The notes under the pieces were generated by a model. It was not told the DNA's origin. It saw nothing but the letters and a program-made list of their open reading frames with translations, and made no database searches. 64,000 nucleotides of DNA from Entomortierella parvispora E1425 (lineage: Eukaryota; Fungi; Mortierellomycota). A program made the position numbers and the translations under genes. Location: assembly GCA_020891255.1 (NCBI GenBank), contig BQFW01000008.1, positions 62,001-126,000 on the forward strand, in the 5' to 3' direction. Shown one piece after another: positions 3,535 to 45,001 of the stretch (its first letter is position 1; the number at the start of each line of letters is the position of its first letter).

Positions 3535-3758
3535 AATTTTTGACCATCTTTTTTGACATTAAAATATTTGAATACATGAATCACCCTGAATGTCTCCGAG
3601 AAGCGGTTTTCACGGCATGCCAGAGATGCTTTGCTGCCGAGAGTCGCCGATCTTTACCCACACATTACAAGCATCGTTGCTGAAGATCCAACCAATTCAT
3701 TTTCTTTTTTCTTTTTCTTTTATTTATTGCTGGAACAAATATGTGATATACCGTTTTT

Positions 3759-4984
3759 CTAGTATGCACCTCCTTTCCGGTAGACATGTTGCCATTTTTC
3801 TACAATAAAGTCGCCAAAGTTGATATCGCCGTTCAATAGTTTCGCGGCCACAGTGCGGGAGTCGCCCTTCTTTGGCTCGGCGTTCTCAAGATCTTCCTTG
3901 GCGCGCTGATCGCTCAAAAGACTGTAGCTTCCTGAAGCAGCCTGACCCTTGAACTCCTCCTTGACCAACAATGGGATCTTGGCCTTGTAGTCAGGGTAGT
4001 AGAAGCAGCACATAGAGTAACGCTCCTCCTGACCATTGCTGACGACGCGATGCAAAGGACTAATGAACTTTCCTCCAGTCAAGAGCGAGAGGTAATCGCC
4101 TCCATTGACCACCAGAGTGTTTTCGAGTGAAGGAACATCGTGCCAGGCCTTCTCATGGAACAGTTGAAGACCAACAGTCTTGGAAGGGGACAGGATCAAG
4201 GTCAAGAACCCCCAGTCTGTATGGGCGCTGTCAGGATCATGGCGAAAAAAGAAGTTGTAAACCTAAAGTGTCAGCCAACGAACAACCTCCAAAACCAACA
4301 ACCAGTTCTTGAGAAAACAAGCTGTTACCTTGAACCAATTTGGGCGGAATTCCCCTGGTCGACATAGGGCAAGTAATGGAAGAGACGCATGAACGAGATG
4401 GTCTCGCTGGTAGTGCAGTATTGCGCCAATTCATTCTCGGGCAGCGCCAGAGCCAAGGAGACGCCTGCCAACAAGCCCTTCGCGACCTGGCACACGTTTA
4501 AATAAAAGTCTTGCAGCGTCTGCTTGAAAGCATCCTTGTGGCCTTGATCCAGTCCTTCCAAAGTGTGATCCTCGGGCCAGGAGTTGGGTCCCTGGAGTCC
4601 ATTGAGATCCTTGTTTTCAATCTTGGACTTGAGGACCTCTGCATCCCATTCGTATCCATAAGAGAAGCCCTCTTTGACCTCTTTGGTGGTCGAGCCGGAT
4701 TCGCCTCCGATGGGGACGTAACCACGCGTGAATCCTCCAGGCTGGATCTTGGGGATGGCGGCCTTTTGAGCGGGATCCAGAGCAAAGAGGCGTTGCGTGG
4801 CATCGAGAACACGGTACGTCTCTGAGGAGGAGAACAAGGGGTGGGAGGGGGAGGTGATGTAAAAGACGCCGTAGGTGGTGAATGCGTCGAGTAATGTCAA
4901 GGCGACATGTTGCTTGTCCTGCAGAGAGGATACCGAGTCAAGCAAGGGCGTAATGTCGATCTTTGGAATGGCGAGTGGCGACAT
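3759..4984 (-). CDS. 2-oxoglutarate/Fe(II)-dependent dioxygenase (IPNS/DIOX_N type)
   Basis: MSPLAIPKIDITPLL..., GFTRGY...KEGF, N.WP, MRLFHY; after one intron GSSAHTDWGFLTLI (HxD), LHRVV (distal His), RYSMCCF (RxS). Confidence 0.92.
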
Positions 4985-5156
4985 GGTTGGTTGGTTGATT
5001 GGCTGAGGCGGGAAGGAAAGAGGAGAACGGGGAAAGAAGAGAGAGGAAGAGAGCGAAAAAAGAGAAATCTCCGAGAAAGGCGCATCCCCGAGGGAGAAAC
5101 AGAAACGAAAAAAGAGACTTGGGTCGGCGTGGGGAAGGCACATGACGCCACCAATT

Positions 5157-37717: not shown

Positions 37718-39709
37718 TCATTTGACTTCAGTGGCGTGGGCCTTTTCTTCGTCAAAGACCTGAACAGACTTCTCCTCGATGGTCTCGGACTCGATGGTCT
37801 CCTCGATCAGATCCTTGTCATCCTTGTAAAGATCCACGCGCTTGATACCAATAGTCGACAAACAGCAGAAGACGGCGAGACAGCAGGCAATAATTGACAT
37901 AAGTCTCTGAGAATCACTGTAGGCGGTGACAACCTGGGCTTTGGTCACAGGATCAAGGCTGGGGATGTAGACAAGAGGACTGTTCATGGCAAGGTACTCA
38001 TCATAGGGACCAGTGACACGCTTGGCCAAACGGACTGGCAGATACTGGGTCCAGATACCTCCGGCCAAAGCATCTCCGAGAGCAGAACCGAAGGAACCGA
38101 GAATCTGAGTGGTACCAATGACGGTAGCGATATCTTTCTTGTCGACGACACCGGTGACCAGGACAGAACTGGCAATGTTGGCCATACCACCGGCAGCGCC
38201 GACAATGGTCTGGGAGATGACTACAAAGGCGGACGAAGCTGTGGGGGCTCTGGCGCGGATCATGAGACCGATACCGCCAGTGTGAACAATGATACCGGCC
38301 CAGATGAAGGGTCGGAGGGTGTTGAAGCGCTTCATCAACAAGGCAGTGATCAATTGGAAGACGAGGTAGCCGACGTTGTAACCACGCTCAAGCATGAGAG
38401 CGTCACCAAACGAGAGGTCGCGGGACACAACCAGGTACTGGGTGTAGTACTGCCAGTTCATGGAGGCCTGAACTGTCATGAAGAACATGACGATCAAGGC
38501 ACCAAAGCACGAGGGGTTTGACCAGATCTTCATGGACATGATAGGGCGGTCCGTGTACTTGATCTCCCAGAAGACAAGAAGTCCCAAAAAGACAATACCG
38601 CAGCAGAACATGGTCAAAATCTTGTAGTTCTTCCAATTGCCCTCAAAGGTCTTGGCAAGGATCATGGGCAAAAGAGTAAGCGATAAGCCTGGGAACATGG
38701 ACAAGAAATACAAGCAAAAAAAAAAAAAAAAAAAAAAAAAAAGGAAAGTAGGATGAGTCTCTCTTCAAGACACTTTTGTGTGGTTTGACTCCTCCAAAAC
38801 AAAATTGCCGAGTTTCTTACCGAGAGTAATGAGAATGGCACCCACGGCATCGAACTCGTGCAAAAGCCATTTAACGGAGCGACGCTCAACCTTGACCTTC
38901 TTTTGACCCTTCTTCTGAAGATACCAGAGGGGACTGAGGATAGCCACGGCACCCACCGCAGCCAGGATACCGACAATAATGTAGACGTTGCGCCAGTTGG
39001 CGTTGGGATGGCTTTTAACGTCGGTCAAAGGATCAGCCAGCCTGGTGGTGACAAAGACGCTGACGATCGAAGGCAAATCATAGAGGGCAAAGACGATACC
39101 ACGGTTGGCCAAAGAGGTAGTGTCGGCAATCAGGACCTGGGTCAATGTTTGCATTCCTGTGCTGCCGATACCATAGAAGATTTGACCGAGCGCAAACTGG
39201 AGAAAGACCTTGGAGGTTCCCTGGATGGTGTATCCGATCAGATAAAAGATCATGGCCACCGTCAAGGCCTGAGCTCTTCCGACGACGTCACTGATCTTTG
39301 TGTAGAAGGGGACGAGGGCAGCCGAGAGAATCTGAAGAATGGTGGGCAGGATACTGGCCAAGGATGTCACCTCAAAGATGGCGGTGATAGCTCCAACGCA
39401 AGCATACATCAGGTTGACCTCGAACGAGTAGATGACAGCCTGGGTCAACACACTATGCGAATGGCAAGAGTATGTGAAATGCAAATGTACGGTTGAGGGA
39501 GAATGAAGGGCAAAGGAGGATGCAAGGGGAGGTGAACAGGGCTGTGTTAGTTTTGAAAAAAAGAAAAAAAAAAAAAAGATCTGATAAGACTGGACAGCGG
39601 TGTGCTGTTGTCCTTACCCTGCAAGCATCCAGGTGTACTCCCTGCGGGACCAGAGTCTTCTGTCCAGAATCCTGGAGCTGGGCGAAGTTGATGGCTGAGT
39701 GTCTGCCAT
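37718..39709 (-). CDS. MFS siderophore-iron transporter (SIT; MirB/Str/Arn family)
   Basis: Three exons, ~14 TM: PFYTKISDVVGRAQA, QIFYGIGSTGMQTLTQVLIADTTSLANRG, EFDAVGAIL, QYYTQYL.V, IVGAAGG...SSVLV, GSALGDALAGGIWTQYLP..L, TAYSDSQRLM (SIT C-terminal signature). Confidence 0.9.
39579..39587 (+). promoter_or_regulatory. ATCTGATAA box (SreA-type iron GATA element) in intron 1 of the siderophore transporter
   Basis: Exact match to ATCWGATAA, the consensus described for Aspergillus SreA. Confidence 0.6.
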
Positions 39710-39969
39710 GAAGGAGAGAGTTGAAAGGGAGGAGGGGTGAGGCAAGGTGCTGAATGAAAAGGAAAGGGATCGATCCCCTTCTTATAGTAACCGCAGAGAG
39801 CTATTAGACCAGAAGACGACTAGCCGAGGGGGCCCTGTGGGAGGAGGACCGGCGGGGAAGTAGCAGGCACTAAAGAGGATGAGTAATTGACATGGCGGAC
39901 TCTGAGCAGCCTATTCTCTTTATTGTTCTTGACGCCATGGTCACTCCGTCAGGAGAGTTTTTTTTTTGG

Positions 39970-39999
39970 ATCAGATAAAGCGGCGTGCACTTATCAGAT
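39970..39999. promoter_or_regulatory. Inverted pair of ATCWGATAA boxes ~260-290 bp upstream of the transporter ATG
   Basis: ATCAGATAA (39970-39978), 12-nt spacer, TTATCAGAT (39991-39999). Confidence 0.75.
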
Positions 40000-40459
40000 G
40001 GAAGATTTTTTTTTTTTTTTTTTTTTGGCAGGTGAAGAGAGGGGTGGGTGAAGACGGAAGGAGAAAGAGATGGAAACTTGAAGTCTCCGCCTGGTAAAAG
40101 CTGTCTGACTAGCTGTCGTGCGAGTGGCCATGAGTTGGATGGAGTGGATGGAGAGTGAATCCTCCGCTTCTCCCCTTTGGCCTCCACGCCTGTTGAGCAG
40201 GTCCTTGTTCCCAGAGTTCATGGAGGTTGAACTTTTTTTTGATTGAATAGAACCCCGTCCTTCACTAGGGTAGCTCCATCTATCCCATTCATCTCGATTC
40301 AGCTTTTTGGGGCCCCTTCCTCGGTAAGACTAGGCCAGCTTGGGCGTGGGCTCGAATGGAGTCGATCTGTGTCTGAATTTGGGCAGTGGGAGGGAATCTC
40401 TGATTTGGAGCGACCAACGATGAGTTTTTTTTTTTGTGTGTGTGTGTGTGTAATGTAGC

Positions 40460-40578
40460 GCCCTCGCTCCACGGTTTGTCTAGAAGCAATTCACTTAGAG
40501 ACGAATCGAGCGAAGGCTGGTGCGCCCACCTGGCGCAACTCCCCGATCTTTCGATCGAGCCCGAAAGGAGTACCTTAC
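40460..40578 (-). ncRNA. Candidate structured RNA element (multi-hairpin), family unrecognised
   Basis: Hand-folded stems 40460-69/40508-17, 40478-81/40499-502, 40484-87/40493-96, 40521-26/40532-37, 40538-42/40567-71, 40543-48/40553-58 with GAAA loop. Three G-U pairs and the GNRA loop exist only on the minus strand. Confidence 0.3.
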
Positions 40579-40598
40579 CCACCTTGTCGTTCTTTTCT

Positions 40599-40607
40599 TT
40601 ATCAGAT
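40599..40607 (-). promoter_or_regulatory. ATCTGATAA box
   Basis: TTATCAGAT on + strand. Confidence 0.6.
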
Positions 40608-40861
40608 TGATTTTTTTTTTTCAATTGATAGTTGAACCCTTGCAGTTGGATCCAATGAGTAGCACGATCTAGCTGGGTTCTAGTCCCATCTGTCTGTTCT
40701 GCGGTCCCGTGGTTCATTTCTTTCCATCTCTTTCTCTCACACACTTTATTGCCGTCAGAAAAGGGGGTCGGATGTCGAATGTACCCACAAGACACTTGGA
40801 CCCTGTTGTTCCCGCCATGCGAGGAACATTATTCTCGACACTACTCGCAGGGCCCAAGGGT

Positions 40862-40886
40862 TGATAAAATTATCTCTATCTGATAA
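40862..40886. promoter_or_regulatory. Triple GATA cluster ending in ATCTGATAA
   Basis: TGATAA (40862-67), TTATCT (40870-75), ATCTGATAA (40878-86). Confidence 0.65.
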
Positions 40887-42063
40887 ATGTACTTGCCGAA
40901 TGAAGGTATTATTTTGAAGGCTCGCCTAGATAAAGAATTGGTTTTATGTATAGCATCATTCCCCGGCGTGGAGACGGCACGAGGCGGTGTTTCGATGGTG
41001 CAATCCGCCCCCGTTCTACAGTTGAAATAGAGATGCTTCTCCTATGGTGTTCCGACAGGGGACATGAGAGCTATCGATTGCAATCGCCGTCCCAGAACTT
41101 TCATTAACGGCGGTCCAGGCCCGCGACATTGAAATGTACCCGATGTTTGGCCAACGCTGTGCTAATGTTGCCACCAAGCAATATATGACGGTGAGAACTA
41201 ACGATTTCATGCAACGGCCAGCTCACAAGTCCAGACAGTCAATGCGATGCTGCTCCGCTTGAAGATCTGAAAGTTGTGCACAGGCATGGACCAAGCGCTG
41301 ACACAGTCTGTTTCTTGTTGTAAATGGGACAAAAAGTTACACCAGATTCTTGGTACACGCTCCAGCCCCTCTGCCCTCTGAACGTTGGAACCAGCTCAAA
41401 CACCATCGCGTTAATCCACACAAAAGGTCCGCTGTGAGCGCCTGGGAAACCTCTGGTGCCTTCACCACCGGTCATCGTCAGGGACTCAATCTTGAGAAAC
41501 TTGTATACTAGGCTTATACAGATATACAGATGAGGTAGGGATGGTATAGTTTGCAGTGCGAATACTGTGGCCGTTGATCATTGTCTAGGGGACTATCCCA
41601 TGAGTCCTCTTCTTCAAGAACATCATGTCAGGGCATGTTTCTCGACTCTCCCGTCAAAGGTGGGGCTCTAGCGGTGAACAAAATTCGAGAGAAGGGTGGA
41701 GCAAGGTGGGCCAAGTTTGAACATGACTCTTCATTCATAAGACATTCTAGTTGAACCCACCAAATAACGAATTAAAAAAAGCGCCCTGCAAGAAGACTGG
41801 CGACATGGTCTTGCTGGCCAAGATCCCACGCCTCTGGCTGATAGTCCAGCGACGTGATGCCCACCTTTCCGAAATGAGGGCAAAAAAAAAAAAAAAAGAC
41901 CGTGTAGGCCTTGACGCTTGACGCGTTTTGTGAGGCTTTGTTAATCATCGAGCCCCTTCTTTTCGCCCTTGGCACGAGCACTCCCTTTCAAAAGGAGAGA
42001 GTATGTTGTTACCAGATTTTCCTTTTTATTATCGTACCTACAAGGTGTCGCAAAGACCTAGAA

Positions 42064-42498
42064 TTAGAAGCAAGTGGTCGTCAAGTGGTAATCGTTTCTG
42101 GACGTGCACTCCATTCGGAAGGTGTTGAGAGTTGGATTCGTACATTCCATTCCACCAAAGTCAAGGTATTTATCGCCAAGAGGATAGCCGTTGATGCTGA
42201 GGCGGACTCCCTTTCTAGAGTTGCACTCTTCAATCTTGAAGTCGAAACCGTCCGAGTGGTGAGCGGTTTGAGACGAGCAGGATTCTTTGACGCCACCCAC
42301 AATTTGACTGCCAGTGTTGCTGCACCCAACAGACACTTTCTTGCCATTGCAGCCTTCCACGATAGCCCAACATCTCCAAACGTCCATGATACTGCCAGCG
42401 CTAGTAAGGCTGGTGGTAAGCGTGATGGTTTTCATCTGCGCAGAGGCGCCCATGACGAGCGAGAGAGCAAGTGCAAGAGGGAAGCCCAGTTTAACCAT
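42064..42498 (-). CDS. Small secreted cysteine-rich protein (144 aa, 8 Cys), unknown family
   Basis: Signal peptide MVKLGFPLALALSLVMGASA|Q; Cys at 43, 50, 59, 74, 92, 119, 131, 143; canonical 5'UTR intron 42623-42512 (GTAAGG..CTAAC..TACAG) 13 nt before ATG; TATAAATA at 42742-42735. Confidence 0.85.
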   Translation of the reverse strand: MVKLGFPLALALSLVMGASAQMKTITLTTSLTSAGSIMDVWRCWAIVEGCNGKKVSVGCSNTGSQIVGGVKESCSSQTAHHSDGFDFKIEECNSRKGVRLSINGYPLGDKYLDFGGMECTNPTLNTFRMECTSRNDYHLTTTCF

Positions 42499-42734
42499 AG
42501 TGAGGGATTTGCTGTAGTGTAATACATGTTGTTTGTGAGGCCGCGAAATAGAGCTGGTTAGGCTACAATGATCATCGGGACTCCTAAAGTGCAGCTACGA
42601 ACATCCAAAACATGTTGCCTTACGTGAGTTTGATCTGATGAAAATGTAGGGAGCTGGTCAAGTAGGAGAGGGCAGCGCTTTGTGAGGCAGTTTGTTGTGA
42701 GGTGGAAAAGATGACAAAGTGAGCGGGCGGGCGG

Positions 42735-42871
42735 TATTTATACCTTCTCATTGCTTATCAAACTACAGTTTCCACGGTCGGCTTTACCGGGCATACAACA
42801 ATCGGCAGGTCGGGGACTTCATACACTGAGCCGTTAAGCCGTCAACTCCTGGGGACAGAAGGATCTGATAA
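42735..42871 (-). promoter_or_regulatory. Promoter of the secreted-protein gene: TATA box, TGATAA and ATCTGATAA box
   Basis: TATAAATA (42742-42735, minus), TGATAA (~42755-60, minus), ATCTGATAA (42863-42871, plus). Confidence 0.65.
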
Positions 42872-45001
42872 CAATCACGCTTCGCGACAGGTCGTCGACA
42901 CGCGGTAGACACCTACAAACAGGAAGCATGTTCACATTTTGCAGCATGTGGGCTCTGTTGTGTGTGAACAAGGTTCGTGAAGTGGAACAGGGCAAGAGCA
43001 CGATTTCATACTAATCCTATGTGCAACTCCAAGAATGACAATGTTTCCCTTACACTCCAGCCCTGCATGTCTATCAACATTCTGTTCGTTGGGAGTAGTG
43101 CCAAAACACAGGTAGTCTAGACAATCCCGTTTTCACTGGATTCATATGTCTGATGAGGAGGGCGAATCCCATGCCGGACATGTCATTGAAAGCGAGACAG
43201 GCGTGAGAACATGGTGATGGTGGTGAAGTACTGGGGCCATCGGAGTAGTCAGAAATAGGAAAACTGAAAGAGTTGAGCCAATCCATCAATCCCAGCTGTA
43301 TTGGTCGTCCGATGTTCTAACCGTTTCTGACTTGTTTTTTGTCTTTCTCGAACCGCTATTATCAAGTTCATTAACGTCGAGAGGGTATCTGTTTGGGCCT
43401 ACTGTCCATGTTAGGGTTGCCATCGATGAATGTGCAAGTAGTCAGAGGTGTAGACGTGATTGTCAGTTACCTCTCAGCATTCCGAGGAAAAAAAAAAACA
43501 AGAATTCGTGTCGAGAGGATCAAAACTTTGAAAACATCATTTTTATCTTCGCTAGGGGGCATGTTCAGAAACAACATGTGAAGTCACCACAAAGGGCCAT
43601 GAAGTCGCGACAGCCTGTTGTCCTTATGAGCTCTGACAGTTTCTGTCTTTGATAGAAGTCTCCTATGGATATTCGAGGTACAATTGGTGGAGTGGGATGA
43701 AGTTTTCTTTTTTTTTTTTTTTTTTTTGGCTGACAGTTTTTGACATTTTTTGACATTTTTTGACAGCAGTTGTGGCGAACCCAGACGCTGTTCAACACGC
43801 GCCTCTGGAGTCCCCTTCTCTTTTCGATTCGGCAGTTACAGCACGTCTAGATGCATTCCCTCTGTCTCTCGTCATCATGATATTCGCCGTCATCTTGCGC
43901 ATCCACAGCGCCGCCCCTATATTCATACGCAGGCCCATCCTTCTTCTGTCATTGCATCCTCGTCACCCCCTACCAGGAGTCCTCCGTTTTCGATTACGAA
44001 AACCCCATTTATCCTCCCCCTGTCTAACCACACAGTCTGTGCTCCTCGGGGGAAAAGGGCCCAAGTACATGTGGACCATCTGCACAGTACCTGGTAAATA
44101 GACCTGCCAAAAGAAGTCGAAGTTCTCAAAAAGAACTATCTAGATAGAGGGCTGACTTTGGAAAAGTAACTATTCCCCGACCTGGAGCAAGAAGAAGTTG
44201 TTTTGGATGACGCCAACCCCATTCCCAACTCCAACTGCAATTGCTATATCTTTCCTCCCTGGACGCTCCAACAAAGCTGATAGCGACAATTTGGACATCG
44301 CCGTCCTCAGCAAAACCCCATCTATAGAATTGAGGAACTCCGCCAGGCACTCCTTTCGCAGGCTCCGGGTATAACTCTCCGCGTTTCATCTTTGCCGCGT
44401 CCAGAGATGTACAGTAGTCGATGGCCCAGATCTACGGAGTTGAGTTAGATCTTTGTTTTTTTTCCGCTCAAACACTACCACCAGGCGATCGAAGATGGGG
44501 CGAGGGGGCTGACGATCTCCCGAAGGTGGCCGCTCGTGAGCCTGAAAATATCGCACTTGCAGATCTAAAAGATGTAATGTACATGGACAAGTACAAAGAT
44601 GGTGGGGCGGGGCGGAACTTTGGGAGAGTCTGGACAGGATGGTGGTATTGTGTCTGAGGGTGATATCATTTTCCACATCTGCCCTCGCAGACAATGGCTG
44701 CGAGGAGATCAATTTGCAACTCGAAACGCTGCAGGGATCAAGTGAGGCGGGAATTACTTCGATTGCTCCACCATTGACAGATGGTGGTTTGGTCAATCCA
44801 CGGCAGACACCGGGCCACACCGTCGGCTCCGTCGACCACGCGACTACTCGAGCGAAAGATGATCTGGGCGATTCGAGCCTTCGGAGAATGGTGAAGGAGG
44901 GCGCACAGGAGGCTGTGGGATTTGCCCAGTGTCGGGACCTGAAGGAAGAAGCGGACTCTGGAGGGGGAGATGAGCGGGGTAGGGGTGAGAACCAGTCAGG
45001 G

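Follow-up and report, generated by a model that had tools for sequence, protein, structure and literature searches.

ATCWGATAA motifs of the iron GATA-repressor type cluster at a SIT-like transporter gene and at the gene of an orphan secreted eight-cysteine protein in Entomortierella parvispora

The nine-base consensus ATCWGATAA was worked out from the SreA regulon of Aspergillus fumigatus. It agrees with the sites used in vivo by Urbs1 at Ustilago maydis sid1 and by Fep1 at Schizosaccharomyces pombe str1 and fio1-fip1, and it has been likened to the palindromic GATA-1 sites of vertebrates (PMC2610380). In a tree with Mortierella species among its taxa, the siderophore-regulating group of GATA factors was described as well conserved throughout the fungi (PMC5311114). 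In Rhizopus microsporus, two SreA homologues bind DNA in DNA affinity purification sequencing (DAP-seq) (PMC12638772), and in Lichtheimia a putative siderophore transporter has been named as a candidate for a part in adapting to limited iron (PMC4133162). The regulation of iron in the Mucoromycota is otherwise little studied, and in one review of iron assimilation in the Mucorales the GATA repressor is mentioned solely among the references. Here, we analysed a 64-kb stretch of Entomortierella parvispora E1425 (Mortierellaceae), positions 62,001-126,000 of contig BQFW01000008.1 in assembly GCA_020891255.1, hereafter the window, in which ATCWGATAA clusters around two neighbouring genes: EMPS_05691, encoding a SIT-like transporter of the major facilitator superfamily (MFS), and EMPS_05692, encoding a secreted protein with eight conserved cysteines (8-Cys protein).

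An exact count on both strands of the window gave seven matches to ATCWGATAA, all of them inside 39237-42871 and none in the remaining 60 kb. These are the seven that a first-pass annotation of the same DNA had listed, and its by-eye claim that the window holds no others agrees with the count. The placements given there were also found, i.e. one box in a coding sequence (exon 2 of the transporter gene), one in an intron (intron 1 of the same gene) and an inverted pair. In 100 dinucleotide shuffles of the window the mean was 0.97 matches and the maximum 4, while a first-order Markov model gave an expectation of 0.86 matches per window (Poisson P(>=7) = 3e-5); the annotation gave about one match per 65 kb as expected at equal base frequencies. 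The motif is thus over-represented, with 7 observed against 0.9-1.0 expected, and seven sites placed at random in 64 kb would be confined to 3.6 kb with a probability of about 2e-7. Shortened forms of the motif behave in the same way: all seven occurrences of the 8-mer TCWGATAA in the window fall in this 3.6-kb stretch, as do eight of the nine occurrences of ATCWGATA. Six of the seven exact sites lie in non-coding DNA, five of them upstream of, or within intron 1 of, EMPS_05691 and the sixth 5' of EMPS_05692.

That the cluster is an effect of chance or base composition, or a set of dispersed-repeat copies, with no regulatory role, is hardly credible. A GATA-containing 9-mer is short, and one of the sites lies in a coding sequence where conserved amino acids could spell it. 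However, none of the 100 shuffles reached seven matches, the sequences flanking the seven sites are mutually unrelated and the sites are therefore not copies of a repeat, and the same placement is met at eight other SIT loci and upstream of relatives of the 8-Cys protein, so that the comparative counts given below effectively refute this explanation. The site in the coding sequence is a different matter. The four residues F-Y-L-I that it encodes are conserved in seven homologues, the synonymous codons differ and the motif is absent from all seven; for this reason we treat the box at 39237 as probably fortuitous. As a functional site it was rejected as unsupported, the motif at this place being found only in E. 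parvispora.

The comparison covered eight loci carrying SIT homologues, together about 124 kb. Every one of the 29 exact matches in these loci falls between -1945 and +182, counted from the start codon of the SIT gene. The first seven loci (L002-L008) contain 23 matches where 2.5 would be expected (P = 7e-15), and the probability of all 23 landing in the 14.5% of sequence that this interval represents is 5e-20. Additionally, when all 9-mers in the 1.5-kb upstream regions of these seven SIT genes were counted without bias, ATCTGATAA came first: it is present in 7/7 upstream regions, 14 times in 10.5 kb compared with once in 94 kb of background. The conservation in relatives that the first-pass annotation had proposed as a check was thereby found, in the form of a non-coding cluster kept at eight other SIT loci, and the 29 of 29 SIT-adjacent matches together with the top-ranking 9-mer support its suggestion that the same ATCWGATAA code would operate in this early-diverging fungus. 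These data support the hypothesis that the motif is under selection beside SIT genes in early-diverging fungi.

The order DSPc phosphatase, gap, SIT gene and CRAL_TRIO gene is kept wholly or partly in L002-L005 and L012. The positions of individual sites cannot be aligned between genera, and therefore the sites turn over while the cluster persists. Their general arrangement does recur: intron-1 sites are present in Gryganskiella (two) and in Actinomortierella wolfii (one), and distal sites at -1 to -2 kb in Linnemannia and Lobosporangium. The two distal sites of E. parvispora, some 0.9 and 1.2 kb upstream, may be comparable to the distal sites at Ustilago maydis sid1. The base preceding the motif is G in 18, C in 9, A in 5 and T in 1 of 33 sites; the site of Histoplasma Sre1 is (G/A)ATC(T/A)GATAA. 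SIT-like transporters are strongly expanded in the Mortierellaceae, with several paralogues per genome. One of these, in Mortierella sp. AD032, has as neighbours a CotH-domain gene and three monooxygenase genes of the FAD_binding_3 type, a group (L008 768-17272) that is possibly a small metabolic cluster; within it the motif occurs at the SIT gene only.

The motif is partly palindromic, ATC being the complement of GAT, and one zinc finger would read GATAA while a second would read the flanking inverted GAT. On a larger scale, neighbouring sites on opposite strands within 60 bp of each other are convergent (ATCWGATAA ... TTATCWGAT) in six of six cases and divergent in none (P ~0.016 under random orientation). 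This uniform orientation may be the arrangement that two bound repressors favour. A fully palindromic TTATCWGATAA is found in Lobosporangium (L012 7000-7010).

We then consider the second gene. In alignments with its homologues, the conservation of the EMPS_05692 protein begins at MVKLG, encoded from the ATG at 42498, with a signal-peptide-like N-terminus. The NCBI model is longer (191 aa), with its ATG at 42751, upstream of the conserved TATAAATA box, and with a 47-aa extension that is not conserved. The position of this box, a putative TATA box, downstream of the NCBI start codon argues against the 191-aa model, which was rejected on this ground and on that of the unconserved extension. An intron in the 5' untranslated region (5'-UTR), with a conserved donor GTAAGGCAACATG, has the same length, 112 nt, as the intron implied by the NCBI model. 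The best model of EMPS_05692 from these alignments is thus a 112-nt 5'-UTR intron followed by a 144-aa open reading frame (ORF). The label of unknown secreted protein in the first-pass annotation was correct; the NCBI model appears over-extended at the N-terminus.

A word search of 5.8 billion clusters and an exhaustive profile search of 1.84 billion representatives returned three relatives of the 8-Cys protein, two from the Logan assembly of SRR5822173 and one from Podila humilis; with a second, unannotated paralogue of 145 aa in the Podila humilis locus, the total of detectable relatives is four. A metagenome scan for further relatives found none. Upstream of three of the four genes there are exact motifs, at -622 and -375 in L009, at -525 in L010 and at -631 for the annotated copy in L011, where about 0.015 ATCWGATAA would be expected per 700-bp upstream region; in the case of the second copy in L011, a match at eight of the nine positions is found at 3648, about 577 bp upstream. 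In the same Podila humilis locus, a ferric reductase gene (5584 onward) follows about 3.5 kb downstream, and an inverted pair of exact ATCTGATAA, 5 bp apart, lies at 4969-4991, about 600 bp upstream of this reductase gene.

At the SIT loci of the relatives, the syntenic interval contains no 8-Cys gene, which indicates that the adjacency of EMPS_05692 and the transporter gene is specific to E. parvispora. As the relatives of EMPS_05692 elsewhere carry the upstream motif, the gene is an independent member of the motif set. These results modify the proposal of a multi-gene iron-regulated locus extending about 3 kb beyond the transporter: a second gene with the motif is indeed present, but the locus consists of just two adjacent genes, each with its own sites, brought together in E. 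parvispora only.

What the 8-Cys protein does can be approached through its family and its predicted structure. The Pfam search gave no family, with no CFEM match even at E = 5, and no Atlas cluster for the protein was informative. The AlphaFold model is all-beta, at a low-confidence mean predicted local distance difference test (pLDDT) of 56. Foldseek searches of PDB with this model gave no match at E <= 0.001, the template modelling (TM) score being at most 0.21, and the best shape match in the Atlas, a bacterial hypothetical protein, reached TM 0.52, i.e. there is no credible fold match. The cysteines are spread over about 100 residues. A CFEM identity was considered and rejected, since Pfam gives no match and the predicted all-beta structure differs from the helical CFEM domain. 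The family is recognisable only through the iron-repressor motif at almost every copy. We tentatively propose, as a possibility with rather less than even support, that EMPS_05692 founds a tiny Mortierellaceae-restricted family of extracellular proteins for iron acquisition or iron competition, whose ligand on the surface of the cell might be a siderophore, haem or iron.

The identity of the first gene was examined in the same way. The exons of EMPS_05691 were translated and searched singly, and the splice sites rest on the sequence and on an identical database protein (P0001, 564 aa), which is 100% identical to the three-exon model and agrees with it in length. Both large exons match PF07690 (MFS_1) above the curated cut-off, consistent with an MFS fold. 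A 76%-identical fragment is labelled 'SIT family siderophore-iron:H+ symporter-like' by JGI, and in the Atlas P0001 has a feature similarity, a language-model similarity and not an alignment, of 0.99 to Ascomycota clusters named siderophore or siderochrome iron transporter. A crude count of hydropathy peaks, made with no dedicated topology predictor, gives 14 hydrophobic segments. Two word-based searches with the transporter matched solely Mucoromycota proteins, with no characterised SIT among them, and a search for a sequence relative in PDB found none. EMPS_05691 is therefore likely, but not proven, to be a member of the SIT family (TC 2.A.1.16), for which the transport of a siderophore is a prediction.

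The direct observations are the exact sites themselves, the enrichment of the motif and its conserved occurrence at both gene families, and the association with iron acquisition extends to SIT-like transporters in nine loci and to the ferric reductase of Podila humilis. We propose, with a probability of roughly 0.8, that the non-coding ATCWGATAA sites are binding sites for a predicted Mortierellaceae orthologue of the repressors of the SreA/Fep1/Urbs1/Sfu1 class, GATA factors with two fingers around a cysteine-rich, iron-sensing region, that would shut both genes in iron plenty. Under iron-replete conditions, the repressor, loaded with iron, would bind the transporter gene at its proximal inverted pair, at both distal sites and in intron 1, and EMPS_05692 at its single upstream site, and both genes would be off. 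Once iron runs short, the repressor would leave the DNA, and expression of the siderophore-type transporter and of the secreted 8-Cys protein would follow. The identity of the factor, the direction of the regulation and the iron signal are inferred.

Several points weigh against this proposal. The SIT membership of the transporter rests on the annotation of the 76%-identical fragment, on language-model similarity and on hydropathy, and the site in the coding sequence, one out of seven, is not conserved. GATA factors of other classes likewise read GATAA cores, and some relatives of SreA, Cryptococcus Cir1 among them, act as activators as well, so that repression is not certain. In an alternative reading, the sites are real and conserved, and the factor that binds them is a GATA factor other than the iron sensor, e.g. 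a nitrogen regulator of the AreA type or another of the expanded GATA factors of the Mucoromycota, or an activating or dual relative of SreA; the genes would then answer another signal, or answer in the opposite direction. Mucoromycota and Mortierellomycota are reported to have enlarged families of GATA zinc-finger proteins, and in DAP-seq the regions bound were similar for all GATA factors of Rhizopus (PMC12638772). Nevertheless, the conservation covers the full 9-mer with its ATC extension and not merely HGATAR, and the marked genes, a SIT-like transporter and a ferric reductase, are classic genes of the iron regulon (PMC2610380). We consider this alternative unlikely, though it is the most serious of those weighed here.

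The intergenic DNA was also inspected. Intron 2 of the transporter gene is filled by long poly(dT)/poly(dA) tracts of up to about 30 nt, which also lie on both sides of the proximal motif pair. Such tracts are the sole sequence in common with the intergenic DNA of the relatives, blastn and tblastx comparisons of both intergenic gaps (2.3 kb and 2.6 kb) with the syntenic loci having found no conservation except these runs; a search of the gaps for hidden genes found no conserved ORFs. A (GT)n microsatellite and, after a T tract, a short tandem TTGACATTTT repeat in three copies are likewise intergenic. A further alternative is that the motif owes its conservation not to sequence-specific repression of the GATA type but, for example, to the opening of chromatin together with adjacent poly(dA:dT), to which the tracts directly flanking the proximal pair would lend themselves, or to a role as a context for the adenine methylation of early-diverging fungi, an interplay of N6-methyladenine with transcription factors having been reported in Rhizopus (PMC12638772). 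Nothing in the present data links the 9-mer to methylation, however, and its restriction to promoters of iron-uptake genes would be unexpected for a general chromatin signal, which makes this alternative improbable. Repression by an iron-sensing GATA factor thus stays the preferred reading. The coordinates of all features are collected in Table 1.

Table 1. Features of the E. parvispora window and of the compared loci. Transporter positions are counted from the ATG at 39709.
Feature	Sequence	Position	Strand	Basis or remark
SIT-like MFS transporter gene EMPS_05691, 564 aa	window	37718..39709	-	translation and NCBI gene call
EMPS_05691 exons	window	39709-39618, 39452-38821, 38688-37718	-	stop included
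ATCAGATAA in exon 2	window	39237..39245	+	coding strand codons F-Y-L-I
ATCTGATAA in intron 1	window	39579..39587	+	+122 from ATG
Possible TATA element TATAAG	window	39781..39786	-	about 75 bp upstream of transporter ATG; inferred, sequence only
Perfect inverted pair ATCAGATAA-N12-TTATCAGAT, convergent	window	39970..39999	.	members at 39970 (+) and 39991 (-); 269-290 bp upstream of transporter ATG (-269/-290)
Distal ATCTGATAA	window	40599..40607	-	898 bp upstream of transporter ATG (-898)
Distal ATCTGATAA	window	40878..40886	+	1177 bp upstream of transporter ATG (-1177)
Re-modelled coding sequence of secreted protein EMPS_05692, 144 aa, 8 invariant cysteines	window	42064..42498	-	translation and homologue alignments
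5'-UTR intron of EMPS_05692, 112 nt	window	42512..42623	-	promoter alignment, two homologues
TATAAATA box (putative TATA box) of EMPS_05692	window	42735..42742	-	conserved in both SRR5822173 homologues
ATCTGATAA upstream of EMPS_05692	window	42863..42871	+	365 bp upstream of ATG, about 120 bp upstream of its TATA box
Poly(dT)/poly(dA) tracts	window	39957-39969, 40006-40027, 38713-38745, 41883-41898
(GT)n microsatellite	window	40437-40452
Tandem TTGACATTTT repeat	window	43737-43765
SIT locus, Gryganskiella cystojenkinii	L002			4 exact matches
SIT locus, E. chlamydospora	L003			4 exact matches
SIT locus, E. beljakovae	L004			6 exact matches
SIT locus, Linnemannia elongata	L005			4 exact matches
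SIT locus, Actinomortierella wolfii	L006			2 exact matches
SIT locus, Benjaminiella poitrasii (Mucorales)	L007	-636 and -201		2 exact matches
SIT locus, Mortierella sp. AD032	L008			1 exact match
SIT locus, Lobosporangium transversale	L012			6 exact matches
Convergent pair	L002	7575/7605
Convergent pairs	L004	7170/7229, 7690/7726
Convergent pair	L005	6903/6956
Convergent pair	L011	4969/4983
8-Cys relatives	L009, L010			Logan assembly of SRR5822173
8-Cys relative KAG0332338.1, Podila humilis	L011	1664-2101
Second 8-Cys paralogue, unannotated, 145 aa	L011	2634-3071	-	convergent with annotated copy 1664-2101

The comparison between genera shows what would be the ATCWGATAA code of Dikarya marking siderophore-transporter promoters across the Mortierellaceae and in one mucoralean. 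Because the code is shared by the Mortierellaceae, a mucoralean and Dikarya, it would be older than the split between Dikarya and Mucoromycota. The motif could be used to predict iron regulons in genomes of Mortierellaceae and Mucorales, and the flagging of the orphan 8-Cys family as iron-linked provides a concrete candidate gene for functional study.

Among the described systems, the SreA regulon of A. fumigatus and A. nidulans, with siderophore transporters such as mirB and sit1, has the identical 9-bp extended consensus (PMC2610380). The likeness extends to several copies of the motif per promoter and to the targets, a siderophore-type MFS transporter and a ferric reductase, the latter found here in a relative. 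The Aspergillus system belongs to Dikarya, whereas the present locus belongs to Mortierellomycotina, is described from its sequence and has sites in intron 1 as well; the enrichment found here, with 7 sites in 3.6 kb and 0 in the other 60 kb, is much stronger than the 5.4-fold reported for Aspergillus SreA (PMC2610380). In the same way, the sites of S. pombe Fep1 (str1, fio1-fip1) and U. maydis Urbs1 (sid1) fit ATCWGATAA (PMC2610380) and are paired, and a siderophore transporter is a target. In these systems, binding and dependence on iron have been demonstrated, whereas for E. parvispora they are predicted.

The 8-Cys protein recalls the haem-binding CFEM proteins of Candida, which have eight cysteines and are iron-repressed, in that EMPS_05692 encodes a small secreted protein whose eight cysteines are conserved, and carries an iron-repressor-type motif. 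It differs from them in its predicted all-beta structure, where the CFEM proteins are helical, in having no Pfam CFEM match and in the spread of its cysteines over about 100 residues.

Closer to the Mortierellaceae, an SreA element has been noted in silico in the promoter of the rhizoferrin synthetase gene rfs of Mucor lusitanicus (PMC9226013), and the SreA-like GATA factors Znf4 and Znf8 of Rhizopus microsporus gave a prior hint of the same code in Mucoromycota (PMC12638772). These reports concern Mucorales and consist of a single promoter or a general DAP-seq catalogue, and they differ from the present analysis in containing no conservation among orthologous promoters, no Mortierellaceae and no 8-Cys family. 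If our reading is true, the known system of the SreA/Fep1 type extends to Mortierellomycotina. The kind of system is thus already known, and what is added here is its conservation across genera, reaching a mucoralean, together with the flagging of the orphan 8-Cys family.

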